From positions 1 through 64,000 of the IMG/VR virus record IMGVR_UViG_3300009184_000029: a DNA stretch of 64,000 nt; one strand, 5' to 3'. The notes beneath the pieces are model-generated. The model was given only the letters and a program-made list of their open reading frames with translations. It made no database searches and was not told the DNA's origin. This document shows positions 287 through 59,394 of the stretch, in pieces. Position numbers and translations under genes: made by a program. Numbering within the stretch: the first letter of the stretch is position 1; every line of letters starts with the position of its first letter.

Positions 287-718
287 ATGATTGATTCAAT
301 TTTGTTAGTGGATGATGAGGATTTGTTCCACTTGGTTTTTGAGGACAGTTGTTCCTTGTTAGACATTACATTGTCATTAAAGAGTTTGAATAGCTCTGAT
401 GAGGCGGCTAAATTATTTGCTGACTGGCAAAAAAATTCAGATGGAAAACCTGAGTGTGTGTTTGTTGATTTAAATATTATAGGTTCATCATTTGATGGTA
501 TTGAACTTATCCGTAAGGTTAATTTTGAATATGGTAATCACGTAGTGATTGGTATTATATCTTCAAGTAACGAACCTGAAGAACAGGCTAAGGCAATTCA
601 AGCTGGTGCTCAGTTTTGGATTATTAAATCAGATGACATTGAACCAAGATTAGAAGAGTTTAGAAAAGATTACGAAGGATATAAAAACAGAACCGCACCA
701 TTCAAAGTTTATAAATGA
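287..718 (+). CDS. Single-domain response regulator (REC, CheY-like)
   Basis: ILLVDDED acidic pocket, VFVDLN phospho-acceptor Asp, ISSS, IIKS conserved Lys. Confidence 0.9.
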   Translation: MIDSILLVDDEDLFHLVFEDSCSLLDITLSLKSLNSSDEAAKLFADWQKNSDGKPECVFVDLNIIGSSFDGIELIRKVNFEYGNHVVIGIISSSNEPEEQAKAIQAGAQFWIIKSDDIEPRLEEFRKDYEGYKNRTAPFKVYK

Positions 719-13959: not shown

Positions 13960-14523
13960 ATGAAAGATTTAATAAAAAAAATATTAAAAGAAGAGACGGA
14001 TATTATGGACTCTTTTACTTATTTTGAAACGTCAAAGGGTTCAAAGTATATTATAAATGACAAAGGACAATTAAGAAGATGGAAGTCTTATCACGAAAAC
14101 ACATCAGGTGAAGATATGGGATTACACTCTTGGAGTGATTTATCATTCTTTGTTGACCCATCTTATTATAGTAGTGTAAGTTCTTTTGAACAATTAAATA
14201 CTAACAAAGGATACAAAGTTGCTATAAGTAAAGATGCTGAAGGTAAAATGTTTTACATGATTTTTGATAACAATCAATGGAGACCTGCGAAATGGGAAGA
14301 TGCGTTCCCTACATATGTGAAAAACAATCCTGAATTAAAAAATAAGGTATTAAGTTGGAGATACGTAAGAGAACCTAAAATTGGGTATAATGTTGTTGAT
14401 GTCTCGTTCAAAAAACAAGGTTCAACACAACTATCAAGTTTTCACATAGGTAATACCGTATCAAGAATTGAGGATAGAATACCTGATGATGAAAGAAATT
14501 TATTTACTGGTAAACGTTCTTAA
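13960..14523 (+). CDS. Leader-bearing protein (MKDLIKKILKEE)
   Basis: Leader class B; start reassigned to the leader Met. Confidence 0.65.
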   Translation: MKDLIKKILKEETDIMDSFTYFETSKGSKYIINDKGQLRRWKSYHENTSGEDMGLHSWSDLSFFVDPSYYSSVSSFEQLNTNKGYKVAISKDAEGKMFYMIFDNNQWRPAKWEDAFPTYVKNNPELKNKVLSWRYVREPKIGYNVVDVSFKKQGSTQLSSFHIGNTVSRIEDRIPDDERNLFTGKRS

Positions 14524-14842
14524 CTTTAATGTCACTACGTAAATAATCAGGTGCCGCCCAAATATCAGATACTAAAATTTCTTTACTATTTAATAACCAT
14601 TTCATTATTAAATCTAAACAGTAAGTTTTTTTGATTGAGAAAAACTTACAGATTTCATTAACTAACATATAGTTAACTTCACAAAAACCATCTTCTTTAT
14701 CTATACATATTTGTGAAAATTCATCACCAACTGAATTTACAAAATATATTTTATTTGGACTATCTAAAGTAATTAAATCTTGGTTATTTAAGTATTTTAA
14801 AATAAACGATTCTATTTGTGATTCTTTAATTATTATTCTCAT
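14504..14842 (-). CDS. Paralogue-family protein (MRIIIKESQ)
   Basis: Aligns by eye with 21969, 24100, 24409 (YLNNQD...YFVNS.GDEF.QI...FFS). Confidence 0.75.
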   Translation of the reverse strand: MRIIIKESQIESFILKYLNNQDLITLDSPNKIYFVNSVGDEFSQICIDKEDGFCEVNYMLVNEICKFFSIKKTYCLDLIMKWLLNSKEILVSDIWAAPDYLRSDIKVKNVYQ

Positions 14843-18397: not shown

Positions 18398-18841
18398 ATG
18401 AATCTACAAGAACAAATATCAAGAATACAATCAATGATGGGGGTTATTAATGAAGGATTACACGACACATCATGGGAAAATGATGAGGGCGATAAAGTTA
18501 CTTTAATAGACTTACTAAATGCAACCAAAGACATACCCGTTAAGAAAATTTCTGTGAACAAGATTAAGTCCAAGTTATTAACGTGGGGTGATGATGAAAA
18601 AGAAATTGCCAAAATAGAAAAGTCTAACTTAAAATATCCGATATTAATATTTGTTGATGACAATAATAAATTCATTTCAATTATAGATGGTCATCATAGA
18701 GGGCAAAAAGCCGTAAAACACAAATTAAAAAAAATCAAAGCAAAGTTAATACCAATTAACTCTTTGCCCAAAGATATAAAAAAAGTATTTAATCGCATGA
18801 ATCAAAATGAACCTACAAGAAGAAATATCAAGAATACATGA
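18398..18841 (+). CDS. Leader-bearing ParB/Srx-like domain protein
   Basis: MNLQEQISRIQSMMGVINE leader; KYPILI...IIDGHHR motif. Confidence 0.7.
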   Translation: MNLQEQISRIQSMMGVINEGLHDTSWENDEGDKVTLIDLLNATKDIPVKKISVNKIKSKLLTWGDDEKEIAKIEKSNLKYPILIFVDDNNKFISIIDGHHRGQKAVKHKLKKIKAKLIPINSLPKDIKKVFNRMNQNEPTRRNIKNT

Positions 18842-19328
18842 GATGATGGGAGTTATATCTGAAAAGTTAGAAGATATACAAGGAACACCATTATACCATA
18901 AGACCTCAACAAGTAGAGGTATTGATATTATTAATACGGATTCATTAAGGGGGGTTTTACCATCAGGTGATTATTTAGGTAACGACAAGAGATTAGCAAA
19001 CACCAAAACACAAACAGCAATATCATTCACAAGAGATAAAAACTGGCAACCAAATAATACAATTGGTGTGGGACTTGATTCATCATTGGAAGATACGGGA
19101 ATAACATTTGTGGTGGATAGAGATAAGTTAAAGACAAAGTATAAGATAGAACCATTCAATTATCACGGAATTGACCCTGATTCAGAATATAAAGAAAAGT
19201 TTAATGAATTAGAAGACCGTGTAATGACAAATGAAATATATCCACTACACAAATATGTTATAGATATAATTTACACAGGGGATAATCCTGAAGTACAAGA
19301 AATAATAGATAGTTATTTAAATAGATGA
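18807..19328 (+). CDS. Leader-bearing protein, possible ADP-ribosyltransferase fold
   Basis: MNLQEEISRIHEMMGVISE leader; PLYHKTS...AISFTRD...ELEDRV pattern. Confidence 0.55.
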   Translation: MNLQEEISRIHEMMGVISEKLEDIQGTPLYHKTSTSRGIDIINTDSLRGVLPSGDYLGNDKRLANTKTQTAISFTRDKNWQPNNTIGVGLDSSLEDTGITFVVDRDKLKTKYKIEPFNYHGIDPDSEYKEKFNELEDRVMTNEIYPLHKYVIDIIYTGDNPEVQEIIDSYLNR

Positions 19329-19600
19329 ACTTACAAGAACAAATATCAAGAATACAATCAATGATGAGGGTTATTAATGAAAACTCGGTAGAAGATAAAA
19401 TTAATGACTTATCAGAAAAGGAAAGAACATTCCTTAAAGATTTCGGAACTGACCCCACATTAAGAAAACTAATGACATCTCAAGAGATTAAGACGGCAAA
19501 CAAATTAGTTAAGAAAGGTATGATGGAAAAAGGGACATCTGATGATAATAAATCAAATGTAATTTATTATGTTGACTCATTTGTATATAAAAGACTATGA
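19325..19600 (+). CDS. Leader-bearing small protein (possible winged helix)
   Basis: Leader nearly identical to 18398; LSEKERTFL...ANKLVKKGMM...YYV. Confidence 0.6.
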   Translation: MNLQEQISRIQSMMRVINENSVEDKINDLSEKERTFLKDFGTDPTLRKLMTSQEIKTANKLVKKGMMEKGTSDDNKSNVIYYVDSFVYKRL

Positions 19601-21302: not shown

Positions 21303-21602
21303 TTAATCAATAATCAATAAATTCTTAAATTCAAAACCTGTCTTACTCTCAACCCAATCTCCGATAATATTCATCGTTTCACCTCTATCTAAACTAAAAA
21401 AGGAGGATATCGTTTTTACAAAATCTTTTTTTATAAAACAATATGTTTGTTTGAAGGTGGATATTATGATTTCACGGTTTTCAATATTATAATTGTTCCA
21501 AAAGTGATAATCACCATCATTGTTTGTAACATAAAAGTTTTGTATATTAAGATAACGAAAGATTACTTTCTCTAACTGTGATTCTGTTATCAAGTATTTC
21601 AT
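21303..21602 (-). CDS. Paralogue-family protein (MKYLITESQ)
   Basis: Leader A; IFRYL...ISSFFSL...IIGDWVE. Confidence 0.75.
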   Translation of the reverse strand: MKYLITESQLEKVIFRYLNIQNFYVTNNDGDYHFWNNYNIENREIIISTFKQTYCFIKKDFVKTISSFFSLDRGETMNIIGDWVESKTGFEFKNLLIID

Positions 21603-21968: not shown

Positions 21969-22301
21969 TTAATTAGACGGAATCTGCATCCACTCAGATT
22001 TAATATTATTGGCCCACAAACAAAAATCAATATCTACCTTTAAGGTCTCCCCAACCCATCTACCGATAGTTTCCCTAGCATCATAACCTTGCATAGAAAA
22101 AAAAGAAGCAACCTCACCAATTAATCCTGTATATATGACACATTTACTATCCTTTTTAAAATATCTAATCTGAGCATATTCATCACCTTCTGAATTTACA
22201 AAGTATACACCATCACCCTTCTCAATCTGAATGAAGTCCTGATTATCCAAGTACTTAAAGATTATTCTATCTAATTGTGATTCTGTAATTAAGTATTTCA
22301 T
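21969..22301 (-). CDS. Paralogue-family protein (MKYLITESQ)
   Basis: Close paralogue of 24409; ends WV+12aa+10aa+MQIPSN. Confidence 0.8.
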   Translation of the reverse strand: MKYLITESQLDRIIFKYLDNQDFIQIEKGDGVYFVNSEGDEYAQIRYFKKDSKCVIYTGLIGEVASFFSMQGYDARETIGRWVGETLKVDIDFCLWANNIKSEWMQIPSN

Positions 22302-22308
22302 AATTTAA

Positions 22309-22587
22309 TTAATCCGAGTGTAAGAATTTAAGTAATGCTCTAATATATTGGGAACGTTTCTCATAGAATTCAGTTTCATTACCATATTGTAAAAACTCCT
22401 CACGTCTATGTCTATCAATGAAATCTTCAATTAATCCATAAATGTGGTCATCCCTGTCAGCAGAATCTTCAAAATCTTCATCATCCATAGCGTAGTTATA
22501 ATCATCCTTAAGCGCTTTCAATTCATCTATAGAAAACCTTCTAAGTAAAAATATGTCTAACTGTGATTCGGTGATAAGGTATTTCAT
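22309..22587 (-). CDS. Leader-bearing acidic protein (MKYLITESQ)
   Basis: Start reassigned; overlapping TATCTTTG and TATTTATA boxes upstream. Confidence 0.65.
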   Translation of the reverse strand: MKYLITESQLDIFLLRRFSIDELKALKDDYNYAMDDEDFEDSADRDDHIYGLIEDFIDRHRREEFLQYGNETEFYEKRSQYIRALLKFLHSD

Positions 22588-23400: not shown

Positions 23401-24107
23401 GATACAGAACAATTATAATGAGTGATTTACATCTTGGCGCAAAACAATCACAGACGGACAAGATAATAAAGTTCTTGGAAGAAAACCAAACGGACAAGTT
23501 AATACTAAACGGAGATATCATAGATGGTTGGGCACTCAAAGGTAGTGGTAAGTGGACAAAGGATTGCACCAAGATATTCAGGAAGTTTATGAAGATGTCG
23601 GAGAAGGATACAAAGGTAATTTATATAAGGGGAAACCACGATGACTTCCTAAAAGATTTCATTCCGTTTAAGTTAAACAATATAAGGATTGTAAGGAAGT
23701 ATGTACATGAAGGAATGGACGGAAGAACATACTTTTGTTTTCACGGGGATGTATTGGATTTCGTTATAATGGAAGCAAGATGGTTGGCAGTAATCGGTGG
23801 ATGGTCATATGATATTGTCATTAAGTTTAATACTCTATACAACAAAATAAGAAAGTGGTTTAACTTACCATATCATTCACTGGCAAATACAATAAAACAA
23901 TCTGTTAAAGGGGCGATTAACTTTGTATCTGATTTCGAAGAAAACGCGAAAGGTTTAACAAAACAGAAGGGATATGATGTTGCGGTGTGTGGACATATTC
24001 ATCACCCGAAGTTAGAGAATGACTATATGAATTCAGGAGACTTTTGTGAGAACTCTACATGTCTTGTAGAAGATTATAATGGGGAGTGGAAAATAATTAC
24101 TATATAA
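23391..24107 (+). CDS. UDP-2,3-diacylglucosamine hydrolase-like metallophosphoesterase (LpxH-like)
   Basis: SDLHLG, LNGDIIDGW, RGNHDD, FHGD, CGHIHHP, YMNSGD. Confidence 0.85.
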   Translation: MEMRYRTIIMSDLHLGAKQSQTDKIIKFLEENQTDKLILNGDIIDGWALKGSGKWTKDCTKIFRKFMKMSEKDTKVIYIRGNHDDFLKDFIPFKLNNIRIVRKYVHEGMDGRTYFCFHGDVLDFVIMEARWLAVIGGWSYDIVIKFNTLYNKIRKWFNLPYHSLANTIKQSVKGAINFVSDFEENAKGLTKQKGYDVAVCGHIHHPKLENDYMNSGDFCENSTCLVEDYNGEWKIITI

Positions 24108-24396
24108 TTATAACTTCTTTAACTCTTCTATCCAAAGTATTCTCAACCCATCTAGCGATAACATATTTAGCATTATCAAATTCTATAGAGAAGAAATTTT
24201 TAATCTCATCAATTAACTCAAAACTTATTACACAGTCACCACTTCTAAAGTATTGGATTAATGAGTCCTTATATTCATCACCCTCTGAATTAACGAAGTA
24301 TATTGTATTTCCTTTTTTAATCTGAATAAAGTCCTGATTGTTCAAGTATATGAAGATTACTCTATCTAATTGTGATTCTGTGATTAAGTATTTCAT
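24100..24396 (-). CDS. Paralogue-family protein (MKYLITESQ)
   Basis: Close paralogue of 24409; ends RWVENTLDRRVKEVIII. Confidence 0.8.
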   Translation of the reverse strand: MKYLITESQLDRVIFIYLNNQDFIQIKKGNTIYFVNSEGDEYKDSLIQYFRSGDCVISFELIDEIKNFFSIEFDNAKYVIARWVENTLDRRVKEVIII

Positions 24397-24408
24397 TATT
24401 GATAAATA

Positions 24409-24741
24409 TTAGTTAGATGGTATTCTCAACATATATCCACGGTGGAAAGATACAAAAGGGGTGTCAGTGACCCTCATTTGGAGGGTATTCTCAACCCACC
24501 TACCAATAACTTGTTCAGAATCAGATTCATCCAAAGAAAAGAAGGAAGAAATTTCATCCATTAATTTGTAATATATCCCACACCAACCATCATCTTTATC
24601 ATATCTGATTTGAGCATATTCATCACCTTCTGAATTGGCGAAGTATATATTATCACCCTTTTCTATCGGAATAAAATCTTGGTTGTCAAGATACCTAAAG
24701 ACTATTTTATCTAATTGTGATTCGGTGATAAGATATTTCAT
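24409..24741 (-). CDS. Paralogue-family protein (MKYLITESQ) whose 3' end overlaps a CRISPR-like repeat-spacer unit
   Basis: Ends RWVENTLQMRVTDT-PFVSFHRGYM-LRIPSN. Confidence 0.8.
   Translation of the reverse strand: MKYLITESQLDKIVFRYLDNQDFIPIEKGDNIYFANSEGDEYAQIRYDKDDGWCGIYYKLMDEISSFFSLDESDSEQVIGRWVENTLQMRVTDTPFVSFHRGYMLRIPSN
24413..24495 (+). CRISPR. Minimal repeat-spacer-repeat unit with a type VI-B-like direct repeat (degenerate partial repeat, ~30-nt spacer, full repeat)
   Basis: Full repeat 24460-24495 GGTGTCAGTGACCCTCATTTGGAGGGTATTCTCAAC with ACCCTC/GAGGGT stem; partial repeat ending GGTATTCTCAAC at 24430; intervening spacer 24431-24459/60. Confidence 0.6.
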
Positions 24742-24773: not shown

Positions 24774-25229
24774 ATGAATCTACAAGAAAACGTAAGAAGA
24801 ATATTAAGGGAAGAATACACCGCAAAACAAATGAAGTTATTAACTCTGGCAAGTAAGGTGGGGTTACTAAAGGTAGGGAAAATGCTCGGAGGTGTAGAAG
24901 ACCTTATAAATGTGTTAGGTGATGAGTTCCTTACAACAAACAATAAGATTAAGATTATTAAGGAAATAGTAGAAACAACCGATGATGAATATATTACACT
25001 AATGGACATGAATGAAAATCCAATAGTTCTCAAGGATGAAGACGGTAAACTTTCACAAATAGAAATGATATATAGAGAAGATGTTGCAGTGTTCCATTAT
25101 GGTGGATATAAATACTCACAAGATTTAGGTGAAAGTTATATGTCTTATGAAGAACTACCAAAATATGTATTAGATGATATTTTTGATATGGTATTAGATT
25201 TCTATACAGGTACTTTAGAGAATAACTAA
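24774..25229 (+). CDS. Leader-bearing protein (MNLQENVRRILREE)
   Basis: Leader B; GLLKVGKMLGG segment resembles those in 15278 and 19597. Confidence 0.7.
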   Translation: MNLQENVRRILREEYTAKQMKLLTLASKVGLLKVGKMLGGVEDLINVLGDEFLTTNNKIKIIKEIVETTDDEYITLMDMNENPIVLKDEDGKLSQIEMIYREDVAVFHYGGYKYSQDLGESYMSYEELPKYVLDDIFDMVLDFYTGTLENN

Positions 25230-25688
25230 TTATTGATTTAATACCTCTTCCACCCCTCTTGTGAAGGGTCCAAAATATGATTCCGTTGTAGATACCTTAT
25301 GATTTAATACCTCTTCCACCTTCCAAGGAACACGAACTTTAACATCGCACGTTGTGGATACCTTATGATTTAAGACCTCTTCCACCAAATGGGCATCATT
25401 GAAAAACGCATCACCAGTTGTGGATACCTTATGATTTAATACCTCTTCCACCCAAGAAGATAGAACAGGACTAAAATCACCTGAACTCATAGAGAATATT
25501 TTAAAAAACGAATTAAAAAAATCATATCTCCACCATAAAGTACCTGACTTATCAAGTTCGAAGTACCAATGTTTATTATCCCTATTAATGAACCATATTG
25601 ACCCATTATAAGGAATAATCTCACAATCACCCAACTCTTTATATAGGTGTTTAAAAATAACTTGTTTAAATCTATCTGTAATAACCAT
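25230..25688 (-). CDS. Paralogue-family protein with in-frame CRISPR-like repeat tail (VEEVLNHKVSTT x3 + VEEVLNQ)
   Basis: N-terminal ~80 aa align by eye to the family; host-type promoter upstream. Confidence 0.75.
   Translation of the reverse strand: MVITDRFKQVIFKHLYKELGDCEIIPYNGSIWFINRDNKHWYFELDKSGTLWWRYDFFNSFFKIFSMSSGDFSPVLSSWVEEVLNHKVSTTGDAFFNDAHLVEEVLNHKVSTTCDVKVRVPWKVEEVLNHKVSTTESYFGPFTRGVEEVLNQ
25234..25452. CRISPR. CRISPR-like mini-array: 3 full 36-bp repeats + 1 truncated repeat, three unrelated 30-bp spacers
   Basis: Repeat GTTGT(G/A)GATACCTTATGATTTAA(T/G)ACCTCTTCCACC at 25285, 25351, 25417; partial at 25234-25254; spacers 25255-25284, 25321-25350, 25387-25416. Confidence 0.7.
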
Positions 25689-25692
25689 AGTA

Positions 25693-25700
25693 CAAATATA
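25693..25700 (-). promoter_or_regulatory. Bacteroidota -7 box TATATTTG
   Basis: 4 nt upstream of ATG 25688. Confidence 0.65.
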
Positions 25701-25925
25701 GTAAGAAATTAAGAAATAAACAAACTCATTCCCCCATCCCCACTTTCAGTGGTCGTTCCATTCCCCTTCGGGTCATTACACTAATGGGTACATTCATTTG
25801 TTTACTTCTTAATTTCCCCCATTGTATGAATCTATAATAAACGTACAACACTAATCTATAATAATCCCCCATAATGAAAGACACATACTATGAAGGGACA
25901 TATAGTTATACTGTTAATGGTATTG

Positions 25926-26059
25926 TACCCCATCGGGATAATGAAATACCCTAAAGGGTATGTTACACGATAAGAATATACCGTTAGGGTATAATACCGA
26001 TAGGTATAAAATGAAGGGGACAATACGAAACATATCTGTTATGTCAGGTTTAACCTGAC
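25926..26059. repeat. Cluster of short inverted repeats in a long non-coding region
   Basis: ATACCCTAAAGGGTAT (25946), TATACCGTTAGGGTATA (25977), ATACCGATAGGTAT (25994), GTCAGGTTTAACCTGAC (26043). Confidence 0.7.
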
Positions 26060-26520
26060 TATAGTGATATGAAACATATGTCCCACAATTTACCACCATA
26101 ATAATTGTCCATATCATGTGTCTATATATGAAAGGGAAATCTTAGAAACCCCGTTGAAGGACACTATAATACACTATTTTCGTTGAAGATTGTAACGACT
26201 AAAGTCTGTCCACGCCACTTTGTTAGTGTAATCTATTTTTCTCTGGAAAATGTATATAGTAAAAAAAACCCTTCTCACACTATCATGAGGACCATTTTTT
26301 TCACTTTTCATATAATCAAAAACACCCCTCACATATATGTCAGTGGGAAAAAGTGGGAACATTTACCTATGGATAATATACACATATTAACCTATATTTA
26401 TTATAGTTGTAGTGTCTAAAAGTGGTCAAGGGGATTAACCCTTAACGCGAGCTCGACTGACATTTTGACAAAATCAAATTTTTTAACAAATAAAGTTATT
26501 AACAATTTCCCCCTGACAGT

Positions 26521-32308: not shown

Positions 32309-32641
32309 ATGGTTAATAAGGTTATTGATTTATATGTAAAAAATTTCTTGGTCTATCATTATGATGGATGGTATTGGATTATTAATCCAAATACTAAAGA
32401 ATGGGTTGTTAACGTTGCTGATAGTGGTTATACTTTTTTTAGTAGGGATTTTTGGACAACGTTTTCTAAGTTCTACCCATCAAAGGATTTAACTAAAGAT
32501 ATTCATAATTGGGTTAGTTATAAATTGGGAGTCCCTATTGGAAAACATTGTCATCCTGATTATGTTCCTCATGAATATAATTGGAAGGATGAGTTTGACG
32601 AAAGTGTGATTGATGAAGTGATTAATAATGGGGTTAAATAA
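32309..32641 (+). CDS. Distant paralogue-family protein
   Basis: YWIINP...SGYTFFSRDFW..FSKF...IHNWV resembles the N-domain of 25230. Confidence 0.55.
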   Translation: MVNKVIDLYVKNFLVYHYDGWYWIINPNTKEWVVNVADSGYTFFSRDFWTTFSKFYPSKDLTKDIHNWVSYKLGVPIGKHCHPDYVPHEYNWKDEFDESVIDEVINNGVK

Positions 32642-47654: not shown

Positions 47655-48137
47655 ATGAACTCGTATTTCCTAAACATTAGCAACGAAGAAAAAAATTCAA
47701 TTGCTGAAAAACATAGAACTTTATATAATGGATTCCAAACTATGAAAATCCATAAGACAAATGAAACCCCATTAAATGTTGAGGATTTGGCATTAGATAA
47801 AGGTGGAGTTACTCTAACCTCTAAAAATGAAATATCAACTTATACTAACACTATGTATATGACAGAATCTAAATCTGAAGAAGTATGTGAGGAGTGTGGT
47901 AAAATGTATGAGGGTGAAGGAGAAACTTGTGAATGTTGGAAAAATGAGATGTATGAAGGGGAAGTATGTGAGGAGTGCGGTGAGATGTATGAAGGAGAAG
48001 TATGTGAAGAGTGCTCAGGGATGAAATACGAGTATGAGAACATCGAAGAGTCAATACAGTTAAAATCTAAGTCTAAACAAGTACATGAAAGTATTGAAAA
48101 GACTTTAGATATGTTTAGAAGATTCGGAAACAAGTGA
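47655..48137 (+). CDS. Leader-bearing protein with EVCEECG/MYEG repeats
   Basis: ISNEEKNSIAEKH leader; three EVCEEC units. Confidence 0.65.
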   Translation: MNSYFLNISNEEKNSIAEKHRTLYNGFQTMKIHKTNETPLNVEDLALDKGGVTLTSKNEISTYTNTMYMTESKSEEVCEECGKMYEGEGETCECWKNEMYEGEVCEECGEMYEGEVCEECSGMKYEYENIEESIQLKSKSKQVHESIEKTLDMFRRFGNK

Positions 48138-48542: not shown

Positions 48543-48812
48543 ATGAAAAAAATCATCAATTCATACGACGTTATACTTTCAGTTATGAACGTAGTTAATG
48601 AACAAGAAGGTGGAGATACTGGAGGTGGGGCAAGCACATCAACTGCAACTGCAACAAAGTGGGAATCCGGTGTTAAAAGAGGAAAGGCTAATCCGATTGA
48701 TTCAAAAATTAAATGGGAATCAGGGTTAACAAGAGGAAAGGCTAATCCGATTGATTCAAAAACTAAATGGCAATCAGGGTTAACAAGAGGAAAAGCTAAC
48801 CCATTGAGTTGA
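48543..48812 (+). CDS. Protein with three 18-aa KW(E/Q)SG..RGKANP repeats
   Basis: VVNEQE motif then 54-bp tandem repeat. Confidence 0.7.
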   Translation: MKKIINSYDVILSVMNVVNEQEGGDTGGGASTSTATATKWESGVKRGKANPIDSKIKWESGLTRGKANPIDSKTKWQSGLTRGKANPLS

Positions 48813-59000: not shown

Positions 59001-59394
59001 TGGTGGAGATGCCGGGGGTCGAACCCGGGTCCAAAAAAGTTTACCATAAAACACTACACGCTTAGGTTATTGTTTTTCTAAACAATCCAAAACTTCACAA
59101 TTCCCTTATTTTATAGTGGTTCGGTTTACTGAGAACTAATCCTCCACTTTGTTTCTTTTTGGGTAGAAACCACACCACAACTACGACTTCTGTTGCAAGG
59201 TTGTATGTCTGCCGACCCCTAGTAGGTTAATCCTAGATTAAGCTACAGATACTTCTTCAGTACGGATTAAACCGATTGTAGAAAGTTTGTTGATAACGTT
59301 GCCGTTTGTAATTTGAACCAGTTTAACGGAGTTAATTCAGCTCCGGCGTGCGTTTTATGACTAATCCATTCCTGTCAAAGCCAAAAACATCCCC
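59001..59394 (-). ncRNA. ssrA: tmRNA; predicted tag reading frame 59303-59238 GNVINKLSTIGLIRTEEVSVA*
   Basis: 5' GGGGATGTTTTTGGCTTTGACAGG; 3' CCCGGGTTCGACCCCCGGCATCTCCACCA; acceptor GGGGATG/CATCTCC with G-U; 394 nt. Confidence 0.93.

Follow-up and report, generated by a model that had tools for sequence, protein, structure and literature searches.

Can a CRISPR array be a memory of foreign DNA and the coding sequence of a protein at the same time and, if so, who writes it and what does it produce? This question is raised by an open reading frame (ORF) of 152 amino acids found on the minus strand at 25230-25688 of a phage DNA window, by which we mean the whole stretch of 64,000 nucleotides analysed here (positions 1-64,000 of the IMG/VR record IMGVR_UViG_3300009184_000029; all coordinates below are those of the window). 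The window represents about 28% of a jumbo phage genome of 222-229 kb: the IMG/VR contig has 222,829 bp and the same sequence is also present on the JGI contig Ga0209087_1000003, of 229,298 bp. The 3' part of the ORF consists of CRISPR-like repeats and spacers, and it is probably a phage-borne array of the VI-B (Cas13b) family, fused in frame to the 3' end of a small phage gene, fed in trans by the host and translated. Taken together, the homology of the repeat, the geometry of the array, the polarity of its turnover, the decay of the terminal repeats, the foreign nature of the spacers, one protospacer and the protection of the reading frame make a fused array of VI-B type the best explanation.

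The array lies wholly within this single ORF. Its 36-bp repeat unit, GTTGTGGATACCTTATGATTTAATACCTCTTCCACC, occurs three times with no more than one mismatch, was never matched in 100 shuffles of the sequence, and Tandem Repeats Finder reports a period of 66 at the array. The repeat translates as VEEVLNHKVSTT in the frame of the gene and reads GGTGGAAGAGGTATTAAATCATAAGGTATCCACAAC on the mRNA strand; position 25452 is both the last base of the final Trp codon of the gene body and the first base of repeat 1. A sequence-only reading of the window had described three 36-bp repeats and a truncated fourth, separated by 30-bp spacers and kept in frame in a small gene, and its coordinates proved exact; the end of the convergent plus-strand ORF at 25229, which it had also placed, agrees with the ORF list. 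A protein identical to that of the window ORF is found in our set of homologues from the protein database (P0001). The features are the following, with the guanine-plus-cytosine content (GC) of each spacer to be compared with 30.5% for the window:

25230..25688, minus strand: whole ORF, N-domain and translated repeat-spacer array, 152 amino acids, TAA stop at 25230-25232
25453..25688, minus strand: gene body, residues 1-79, alpha/beta domain predicted to fold by AlphaFold2, on the leader side of the array
25417..25452, minus strand: repeat 1, gene-proximal and newest, 0 mismatches; encodes VEEVLNHKVSTT, the end of the last helix of the domain
25387..25416, minus strand: spacer 1, gene-proximal, 30 bp, GC 40%, unique to this phage; encodes GDAFFNDAHL and matches parB at 29/30
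25351..25386, minus strand: repeat 2, 1 mismatch, a synonymous change of GTA to GTC
25321..25350, minus strand: spacer 2, 30 bp, GC 43%; encodes CDVKVRVPWK, an old unit common to many relatives and to arrays of other sub-families
25285..25320, minus strand: repeat 3, 1 mismatch, a synonymous change of TCC to TCT
25255..25284, minus strand: spacer 3, distal, 30 bp, GC 43%; encodes ESYFGPFTRG, a trailer-end unit common with relatives
25230..25254, minus strand: terminal repeat, degenerate and shortened, with 21 nucleotides kept at 25234-25254; reads VEEVLNQ-stop
25689..25830, minus strand: conserved long imperfect hairpin directly before the start codon, in the 5' untranslated or promoter region; its membership in the element is uncertain

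The locus belongs to a large family. Searching IMG/VR with a 21-nucleotide core of the repeat retrieved 18 loci carrying 44 arrays, all of them on an ORF with the same N-domain, and the exact geometry of 36-bp repeats and 30-bp spacers is found in 44/44 arrays bar one 42-bp repeat variant, with up to 8 or more repeats per array. This variant, the sole departure from 36 bp, comes from a conserved 6-nucleotide insertion which preserves the frame and reads VEDVLSHNVKVSTT; it lies at about 2073-2174 of locus L004 and was inherited in L005, L009, L010, L015, L017 and L018. A profile search added 48 further loci, on contigs of up to 326 kb, so that the gene-plus-array unit is present on over 60 viral contigs. 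In the protein database we counted more than 1,136 homologues, none of them named or carrying a Pfam domain, whose lengths increase in steps of 22 amino acids (130, 152, 174, 196, 218 and on). The N-domain family forms 449 clusters at 50% identity, and a tail with a period of 22 amino acids is present in 70/148 of the listed representatives that we examined.

Comparing these relatives, we could establish how the array grows. Units found only once make up 53% of the gene-proximal units versus 17% of the terminal ones, and in pairs whose N-domains are 90-97% identical the first unit is common to both in 3% of cases and the last in 19%. The order of the units is conserved among relatives, with internal losses, and it is at the trailer end that common units are found (CDVKVRVPWK, ESYFGPFTRG and DVEMSVMNYV). 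Repeats also depart increasingly from the consensus, with 4.0 mismatches at the proximal unit and 12.4 at the terminal one. Thus, the gene body stands on the leader side, new 30-bp spacers appear beside it together with a fresh 36-bp repeat, and older units move toward the 3' end, where their repeats decay; the earlier proposal that the gene body acts as the leader side is borne out by this fast and polarised turnover.

The unit CDVKVRVPWK, with its variants CDVEVRVPWK and YDVEVRVPWK, is present in 30/120 proteins across sub-families with different terminal motifs (e.g., P0030, P0034 and P0037); either it dates far back, or arrays exchange it and selection keeps it. The arrays often come two or three in tandem, each after its own copy of the N-domain gene. 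Such clusters of gene-plus-array units are seen at 4412-10218 of L014 and 5708-10979 of L018, between homologues of window positions about 18427-19596, and are absent from the phage of the window. The cluster is thus present or missing among close relatives, with no large gene linked to it, and the arrays are accessory and occupy a hypervariable region made up of small paralogous genes.

The repeat is related to those of known VI-B arrays. It shares 23/36 positions, without gaps, with the CRISPR-2 repeat of Flavobacterium columnare ATCC 49512 and 21/36 with the F. branchiophilum repeat; no more than 2 of 20,000 shuffles scored as high in either case. In other phage lineages, variants of the repeat share up to 27/36 positions with Flavobacterium repeats, the closest known repeats being 64-75% identical. 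At the 3' end the agreement is still better: 12-14 of the last 14 nucleotides are identical to the better-matching Flavobacterium type (the 5' end is GGTG, not GTTG), and in the lineage variants they equal the F. branchiophilum type (AGGGTAAACACAAC) or match the F. columnare type at 13/14. Because the match is to one type or the other according to the lineage, the 3' end tracks different host repeat types. In topology the predicted fold of the repeat is that of the Flavobacterium repeats, with a 5-bp terminal stem, but its central stem, of 3-4 bp, is weak.

The geometry points in the same direction. The CRISPR-2 array of F. columnare ATCC 49512 has a 36-nucleotide repeat and 30-nucleotide spacers and is, by elimination, the VI-B array of this strain, CRISPR-1 being listed with cas9 and cas1 (PMC5395568, Table 4). 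Hoikkala et al. described the VI-B locus of F. columnare as having a 36-bp repeat and lacking cas1 and cas2, its spacers being acquired in trans via the II-C adaptation proteins; the locus is transcribed from leader to array and readily takes up self-targeting spacers (PMC8092290). The orientation of the phage array relative to the gene body is this leader-to-array orientation of VI-B arrays. The VI-B geometry that had been guessed from the sequence alone is thereby supported by homology to real Flavobacterium 36/30 repeats, but the guide strand had been misplaced: it was expected on the plus strand, through read-through from the convergent gene, and both the alignment with VI-B repeats and the spacer antisense to parB (see below) place it on the mRNA strand.

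The spacers, as had been proposed, are foreign in composition. Their GC content is 0.40-0.425, versus 0.32 for the N-domain bodies and 0.22 at third codon positions of the window ORFs. The amino acid composition of decapeptides found only once follows a random translation of the spacer DNA (r = 0.90) rather than the N-domain (r = 0.47), and for common, old peptides the correlation with random translation falls to 0.69. The variable block is a 30-nucleotide unit of DNA offset from the codons, starting with the third position of the repeat's last Thr codon; because it ends before the first G of the repeat, the tenth residue is limited to NNG codons. The origin of one spacer could be traced. A metagenome scan with spacer 1 found the phage itself and a 7.9-kb bacterial contig (L020), where 29/30 positions match a chromosomal parB in the order parA-parB-DUF5683-dapB-lepB, on DNA with a GC of 41-50%. 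We take this synteny, and the DUF5683 and DUF5684 families, to be typical of Bacteroidota; an exact-protein look-up starting from the parB contig returned the same 7.9-kb contig only. The phage mRNA carries spacer 1 antisense to the parB mRNA, a single case for which the chance of coincidence is 0.5. The search for protospacers suggested by the sequence-only reading has thus yielded one match, and at least one spacer comes from a bacterial chromosome.

A gene met near some arrays touches on the host. In one relative (L063, 1390-3885, minus strand) the array gene adjoins an ORF resembling SusC/TonB-dependent receptors, with CarboxypepD_reg, Plug and OMP barrel domains, a cargo atypical for a phage, and similar ORFs of about 825 amino acids lie near arrays in L059, L060, L066 and L068, the one of L060 having no family match. 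This receptor-like gene also points to a likely Bacteroidota host. The ORFs of about 830 amino acids beside some arrays were also considered as cas genes and rejected, being SusC/TonB-receptor-like or without family match.

What sets this family apart is that the array is coding. In the 44 arrays found at the DNA level, the reading frame stays open from the start codon across all repeats and spacers. The 68 distinct spacers contain 0 stops in 748 codons in the frame of the gene versus 20-61 in each of the other five frames, and in 144 distinct spacers there are 2 stops in 1,584 codons versus 51-139 in each other frame. Both of these in-frame stops (in L053 and L071) fall in the last spacer of an array and are followed by one more recognisable repeat, so that the tail is merely shortened; nonsense mutations appear to trim the arrays from their distal end. 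Of the substitutions that separate orthologous spacers, 18 are synonymous and 17 non-synonymous, when 23-30% synonymous changes are expected (P = 2e-4 to 7e-3), which corresponds for retained spacers to a ratio of non-synonymous to synonymous rates (dN/dS) of about 0.3, estimated from only 35 substitutions. Since the gene frame is free of stops and the changes in the spacers are biased toward synonymous ones, translation must be under selection, and the idea that the array diversifies a translated protein tail is confirmed in this respect.

Protein-level constraint is not the only one. Repeat variants are enriched for synonymous changes and, at the same time, the entropy at synonymous sites is lower in repeat 1 (0.75 bits) than in the gene body (1.31 bits). 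This conservation is strongest at the ends of the repeat, down to 0.26 bits for the four-fold degenerate GTG of the first Val, and synonymous variation of the gene body is normal right up to the repeat. Because of this synonymous conservation, a nucleic-acid constraint must act on repeat 1 beyond the protein constraint, and the repeats carry both. The sequence-only reading had held selection on the peptides of the spacers and synonymous change in the repeats to speak against a CRISPR origin; the two were indeed found, yet they coexist with the CRISPR-like signals described above and do not refute them.

The protein itself can be described in part. AlphaFold2 predicts that residues 1-90 fold, with a confidence score (pLDDT) of about 90, that the last helix ends with the VEEVLNHK of repeat 1 and that the rest of the tail is disordered. 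The product would be a folded domain of about 90 amino acids followed by a disordered tail of 22-amino-acid units, each made of 12 constant and 10 spacer-encoded residues. The N-domain proper (the first 79 residues) is a distant paralogue, at about 21% identity, of a family of small proteins starting with MKYLITESQLD, of which the window has six copies or more, and repeat 1 aligns with the conserved C-terminal WVExxL segment of these array-less paralogues. Neither the ORF nor the N-domain matched a family in Pfam or PHROGs, a Foldseek search of the N-domain against the Protein Data Bank returned nothing at E <= 0.001, and its matches in BFVD are solely uncharacterised proteins of uncultured freshwater phages. 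With no structural or family match, the suggestion that the N-domain is the partner protein of a compact protein-plus-array system is left without support.

How could such a gene work? By analogy with F. columnare VI-B, the adaptation complex of the host (Cas1-Cas2) would insert the spacers in trans. The mRNA carries the repeat-spacer units in the sense of a CRISPR RNA (crRNA), and Cas13b of the host would probably bind or process it; it could then either be loaded with phage guides, directed for instance against the parB mRNA of the host, or be soaked up as by a sponge. Translation may have been kept because it secures the expression of a long array within an mRNA and because the tail itself gained a function. 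Rho-dependent termination acts within untranslated CRISPR arrays, and translation could shield a long array in mRNA from such premature termination. The selection on the peptides suggests that more than this shielding is at work. The gene may act through RNA (guides or a sponge), through protein (a scaffold on which random peptides accumulate as a tail and are filtered by selection) or through both.

Several results weigh against this reading. In the 64-kb window and among the large ORFs of related loci totalling about 650 kb, we found none of cas1, cas2, cas9 and cas13b. No conserved DNA motif that could be called a leader was found just upstream of repeat 1. The central hairpin, of 6-7 bp in Flavobacterium, is weak in the phage repeat, whose fold energy is -5.4 to -6.3 versus -10.9 to -12.2 kcal/mol, and binding by Cas13b is therefore uncertain. 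With a degenerate 30-nucleotide core of the repeat as query, 185,579 species-representative genomes yielded 0 hits, and no host array with the exact repeat was thus found among them. Protospacers are scarce: five spacers searched against IMG/VR matched solely the arrays themselves, one of these five searched also against GTDB genomes and about 45 spacers (from the L001 and L010 arrays) searched against INPHARED phages gave none, and the parB match stands as the only one. Finally, the purifying selection on the peptides may mean that protein rather than RNA is the main product, and distant relatives of the N-domain, which keep tails with a period of 22 amino acids although their repeats have decayed, likewise point to a protein product.

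The two outputs could also be combined. Host integrases of freshwater Bacteroidota would write 30-bp pieces of foreign DNA into a gene of their phages, each heritable insert serving both as a Cas13b-type guide in the mRNA and as a 10-residue peptide on a protein scaffold, with selection then acting on the peptides. As a complete scenario we regard this dual diversification as possible but doubtful.

Alternatively, the array would be above all a device for protein diversification, in which host adaptation writes random 10-residue peptides, taken from foreign DNA, into the tail, the function as RNA guide is lost or secondary, and the repeat keeps only the ends that integration needs to preserve. 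The almost complete protection of the gene frame from stops and the low dN/dS of retained spacers fit such a device, as does the fact that old peptides depart from random translation when those found once do not. It would also account for a central hairpin that is weakened when synonymous sites at the ends of the repeat are conserved, for the periodic tails of distant relatives on decayed DNA repeats, and for the retention of CDVKVRVPWK across sub-families. However, the last 14 nucleotides of the repeat track two Flavobacterium VI-B types, for which compatibility with the effector or the crRNA is an easier explanation; the N-domain has no family or fold match from which a function could be assigned, the tail is predicted to be disordered, and the estimate of selection comes from few substitutions. 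We consider a mainly proteinaceous role unlikely.

Another possibility is that the phages are autonomous, i.e., that these jumbo phages (200-330 kb) carry, in another part of their genomes, genes for adaptation and/or an effector which the arrays would serve. Some huge phages do carry CRISPR-Cas systems of their own, the window covers only part of the genome, the repeat was met in none of the cellular genomes searched, and the arrays retrieved with the repeat all lie on viral contigs. Against this, no cas-like ORF was seen in the window or in the about 650 kb examined on more than 50 contigs; PADLOC and Pfam scans of the 112 window ORFs gave no cas gene, in agreement with what had been concluded from the sequence, and their weak 'Cas9' match at 3e-7 is most likely an HNH endonuclease ORF. 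Nor were cas genes found in the 10-kb flanks of a relative, or csx27 and csx28 in the window or these flanks. The arrays lie in a hypervariable region where a cluster of three comes and goes without a linked large gene, and Flavobacterium VI-B arrays, to whose repeat family the phage repeat clearly belongs, already use trans-acting adaptation in their hosts. Autonomy is, in our opinion, improbable.

The last alternative, an ordinary protein tandem repeat with hypervariable linkers, shaped by unequal recombination and resembling CRISPR by coincidence, is close to refuted: it would agree with an in-frame, translated array under protein-level selection, with a repeat 1 that belongs to the structure of the domain and can be aligned to the C-terminal end of the paralogues without arrays, and with the artefact class of CRISPR-like false arrays inside ORFs (PMC5294841), but recombination cannot make new and mutually unrelated 30-bp blocks, let alone blocks with a foreign GC, a random-like translation and an offset from the codon frame, one of which matches a bacterial parB at 29/30, nor does it explain the homology to real Flavobacterium CRISPR repeats of the same 36/30 geometry or a novelty so strongly polarised toward the gene body.

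The fused VI-B-type array, which we retain, can be placed among known systems. Like the Flavobacterium VI-B arrays (CRISPR-2 of F. columnare and CRISPR-5 to 7 of F. branchiophilum), it has 36-nucleotide repeats and 30-nucleotide spacers, a variable end at the leader and a leader-distal repeat end in ...ACAAC; unlike them, it is fused in frame to a gene, translatable, without cas13b nearby and endowed with a weak central hairpin. It shares with the orphan arrays, mini-arrays and solitary repeat units of archaeal viruses and huge phages a viral location, the lack of cas genes and presumably the use of host machinery. Some spacers of virus-borne mini-arrays are directed at hosts or at competing elements. 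These mini-arrays are non-coding and their repeats are usually close copies of host repeats, whereas here the array is coding in all members, a conserved protein domain takes the place of the 'leader' and the repeat has been adapted to encoding a helix. Racr are phage-encoded mimics of repeats or guides that sequester Cas proteins. RNA anti-CRISPRs are, like the array mRNA, phage transcripts with repeat-like sequence which could occupy a host effector, but they are small non-coding RNAs without spacer turnover, whereas the phage array grows by acquisition and is translated; one of them is rAcrIIA1 (bioRxiv 10.64898/2026.06.03.729762). The false arrays in ORFs (PMC5294841) also have regular repeats in coding sequence and no cas genes; they lack foreign spacers, polarised novelty, homology to real repeats and protospacers, and the phage array has all four, the last in a single case.

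Two kinds of protein diversification call for comparison as well. Precursors of ribosomally synthesized and post-translationally modified peptides (RiPPs) with several cores, such as the cyanobactin precursor PatE, also have an N-terminal domain and conserved segments flanking hypervariable peptides, with conservation of the flanks at the DNA level; they differ in that the peptides of the phage array are random-like and their 30-nucleotide block is out of codon register. No maturation enzyme of RiPPs (protease, cyclase, radical SAM or YcaO) was present among 25 of the 41 Pfam families matched by the 112 window ORFs, and the array neighbours of a relative have no Pfam match bar one glycosyltransferase. 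Diversity-generating retroelements are also phage-encoded and diversify the C-terminal part of a protein in a targeted way, but by adenine-specific mutagenesis, when the phage array varies by whole cassettes of 30 bp of foreign DNA; no reverse-transcriptase family was seen among the same 25 families. The VIPR systems (bioRxiv 10.64898/2026.10.15.759431) were considered and set aside as unrelated, their guide RNA being of a different kind.

Some observations concern the surroundings of the array. Upstream of the gene, 25689-26520 is a stretch of about 830 nucleotides without long ORF, conserved as non-coding sequence at 73-86% identity in relatives and strongly folded (z = -5.0); it includes the hairpin of about 125 nucleotides before the start codon, whose conservation is too high to show covariation. 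This region may be an element of the 5' untranslated region or a non-coding RNA. The array-less paralogues (MKYLITESQLD...WVENTL...) are found on the minus strand at 14504-14842, 21303-21602, 21969-22301, 22309-22587, 24100-24396 and 24409-24741 and on the plus strand at 32309-32641, further window ORFs matching only at the MKYLITESQ N-terminus. They share ancestry at the level of the fold with the N-domain of the array gene and have no family match. A solitary VI-B-like repeat at their 3' end was considered and rejected, the similarity not being significant.

The genome around is that of a phage without close relatives in the collection searched: when the 5 kb surrounding the locus were compared with INPHARED phages by megablast, no relative was found. 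The window genes include those of a thymidylate synthase, a ClpB-like ATPase, an M23 peptidase, sugar-nucleotide enzymes, a transfer RNA (tRNA) and a transfer-messenger RNA (tmRNA). Rfam identified no CRISPR-DR or other family on the array, and its scan of the whole window returned the tRNA and the tmRNA only; the tmRNA gene (59001-59394, minus strand; RF00023, 133 bits, E = 7.5e-52) is absent from the ARAGORN output. A link with the array is conceivable, in that an array mRNA cut by the effector would leave ribosomes at non-stop ends. Auxiliary genes atypical for a phage comprise a response-regulator receiver domain (287-718, plus strand), a glutamine-synthetase-like ORF and an FKBP isomerase, and Pfam adds a dTDP-sugar epimerase, a nucleotidyl transferase and a NUDIX protein. 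None of the spacers has a second copy in the window or the related loci, and comparing the spacers with the pan-genome of these phages (the window and 72 loci, 650 kb) gave only chance matches of 11-13 nucleotides and one low-complexity match of 21/22. The window also has tandem repeats unrelated to the array, at 48653-48807 (54-bp unit, 2.9 copies, 89% matches) and 47945-48014 (36-bp unit, 1.9 copies, 94% matches).

CRISPR arrays are regarded as non-coding and, to our knowledge, none is known to be translated; a literature search for this repeat, its peptide motif or CRISPR arrays that are translated or encode protein returned nothing. Orphan arrays on phages and RNAs that mimic repeats had been described before; we know of no precedent for an array that is open for translation in all members of its family, follows a protein domain in the position of the leader and contributes, through its repeat, part of this domain. 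These phages would thus harbour a large and widespread family in which the array is at once a CRISPR-type memory and an open reading frame. If this is true, phages offer a landing pad to the adaptation complexes of their hosts and inherit the result, a coding gene can serve as the leader of an array, and repeats evolve under joint RNA, DNA and protein constraint. Filters that drop 'arrays inside ORFs' as false positives would then lose real biology. The family would constitute a natural case where peptides of random sequence are made at a known site and then filtered by selection and, should both outputs prove real, an 'adaptive library' made at the protein level by the CRISPR machinery. De novo peptide evolution, the manipulation of Cas13b by phages and adaptation in trans would all become testable in one locus.

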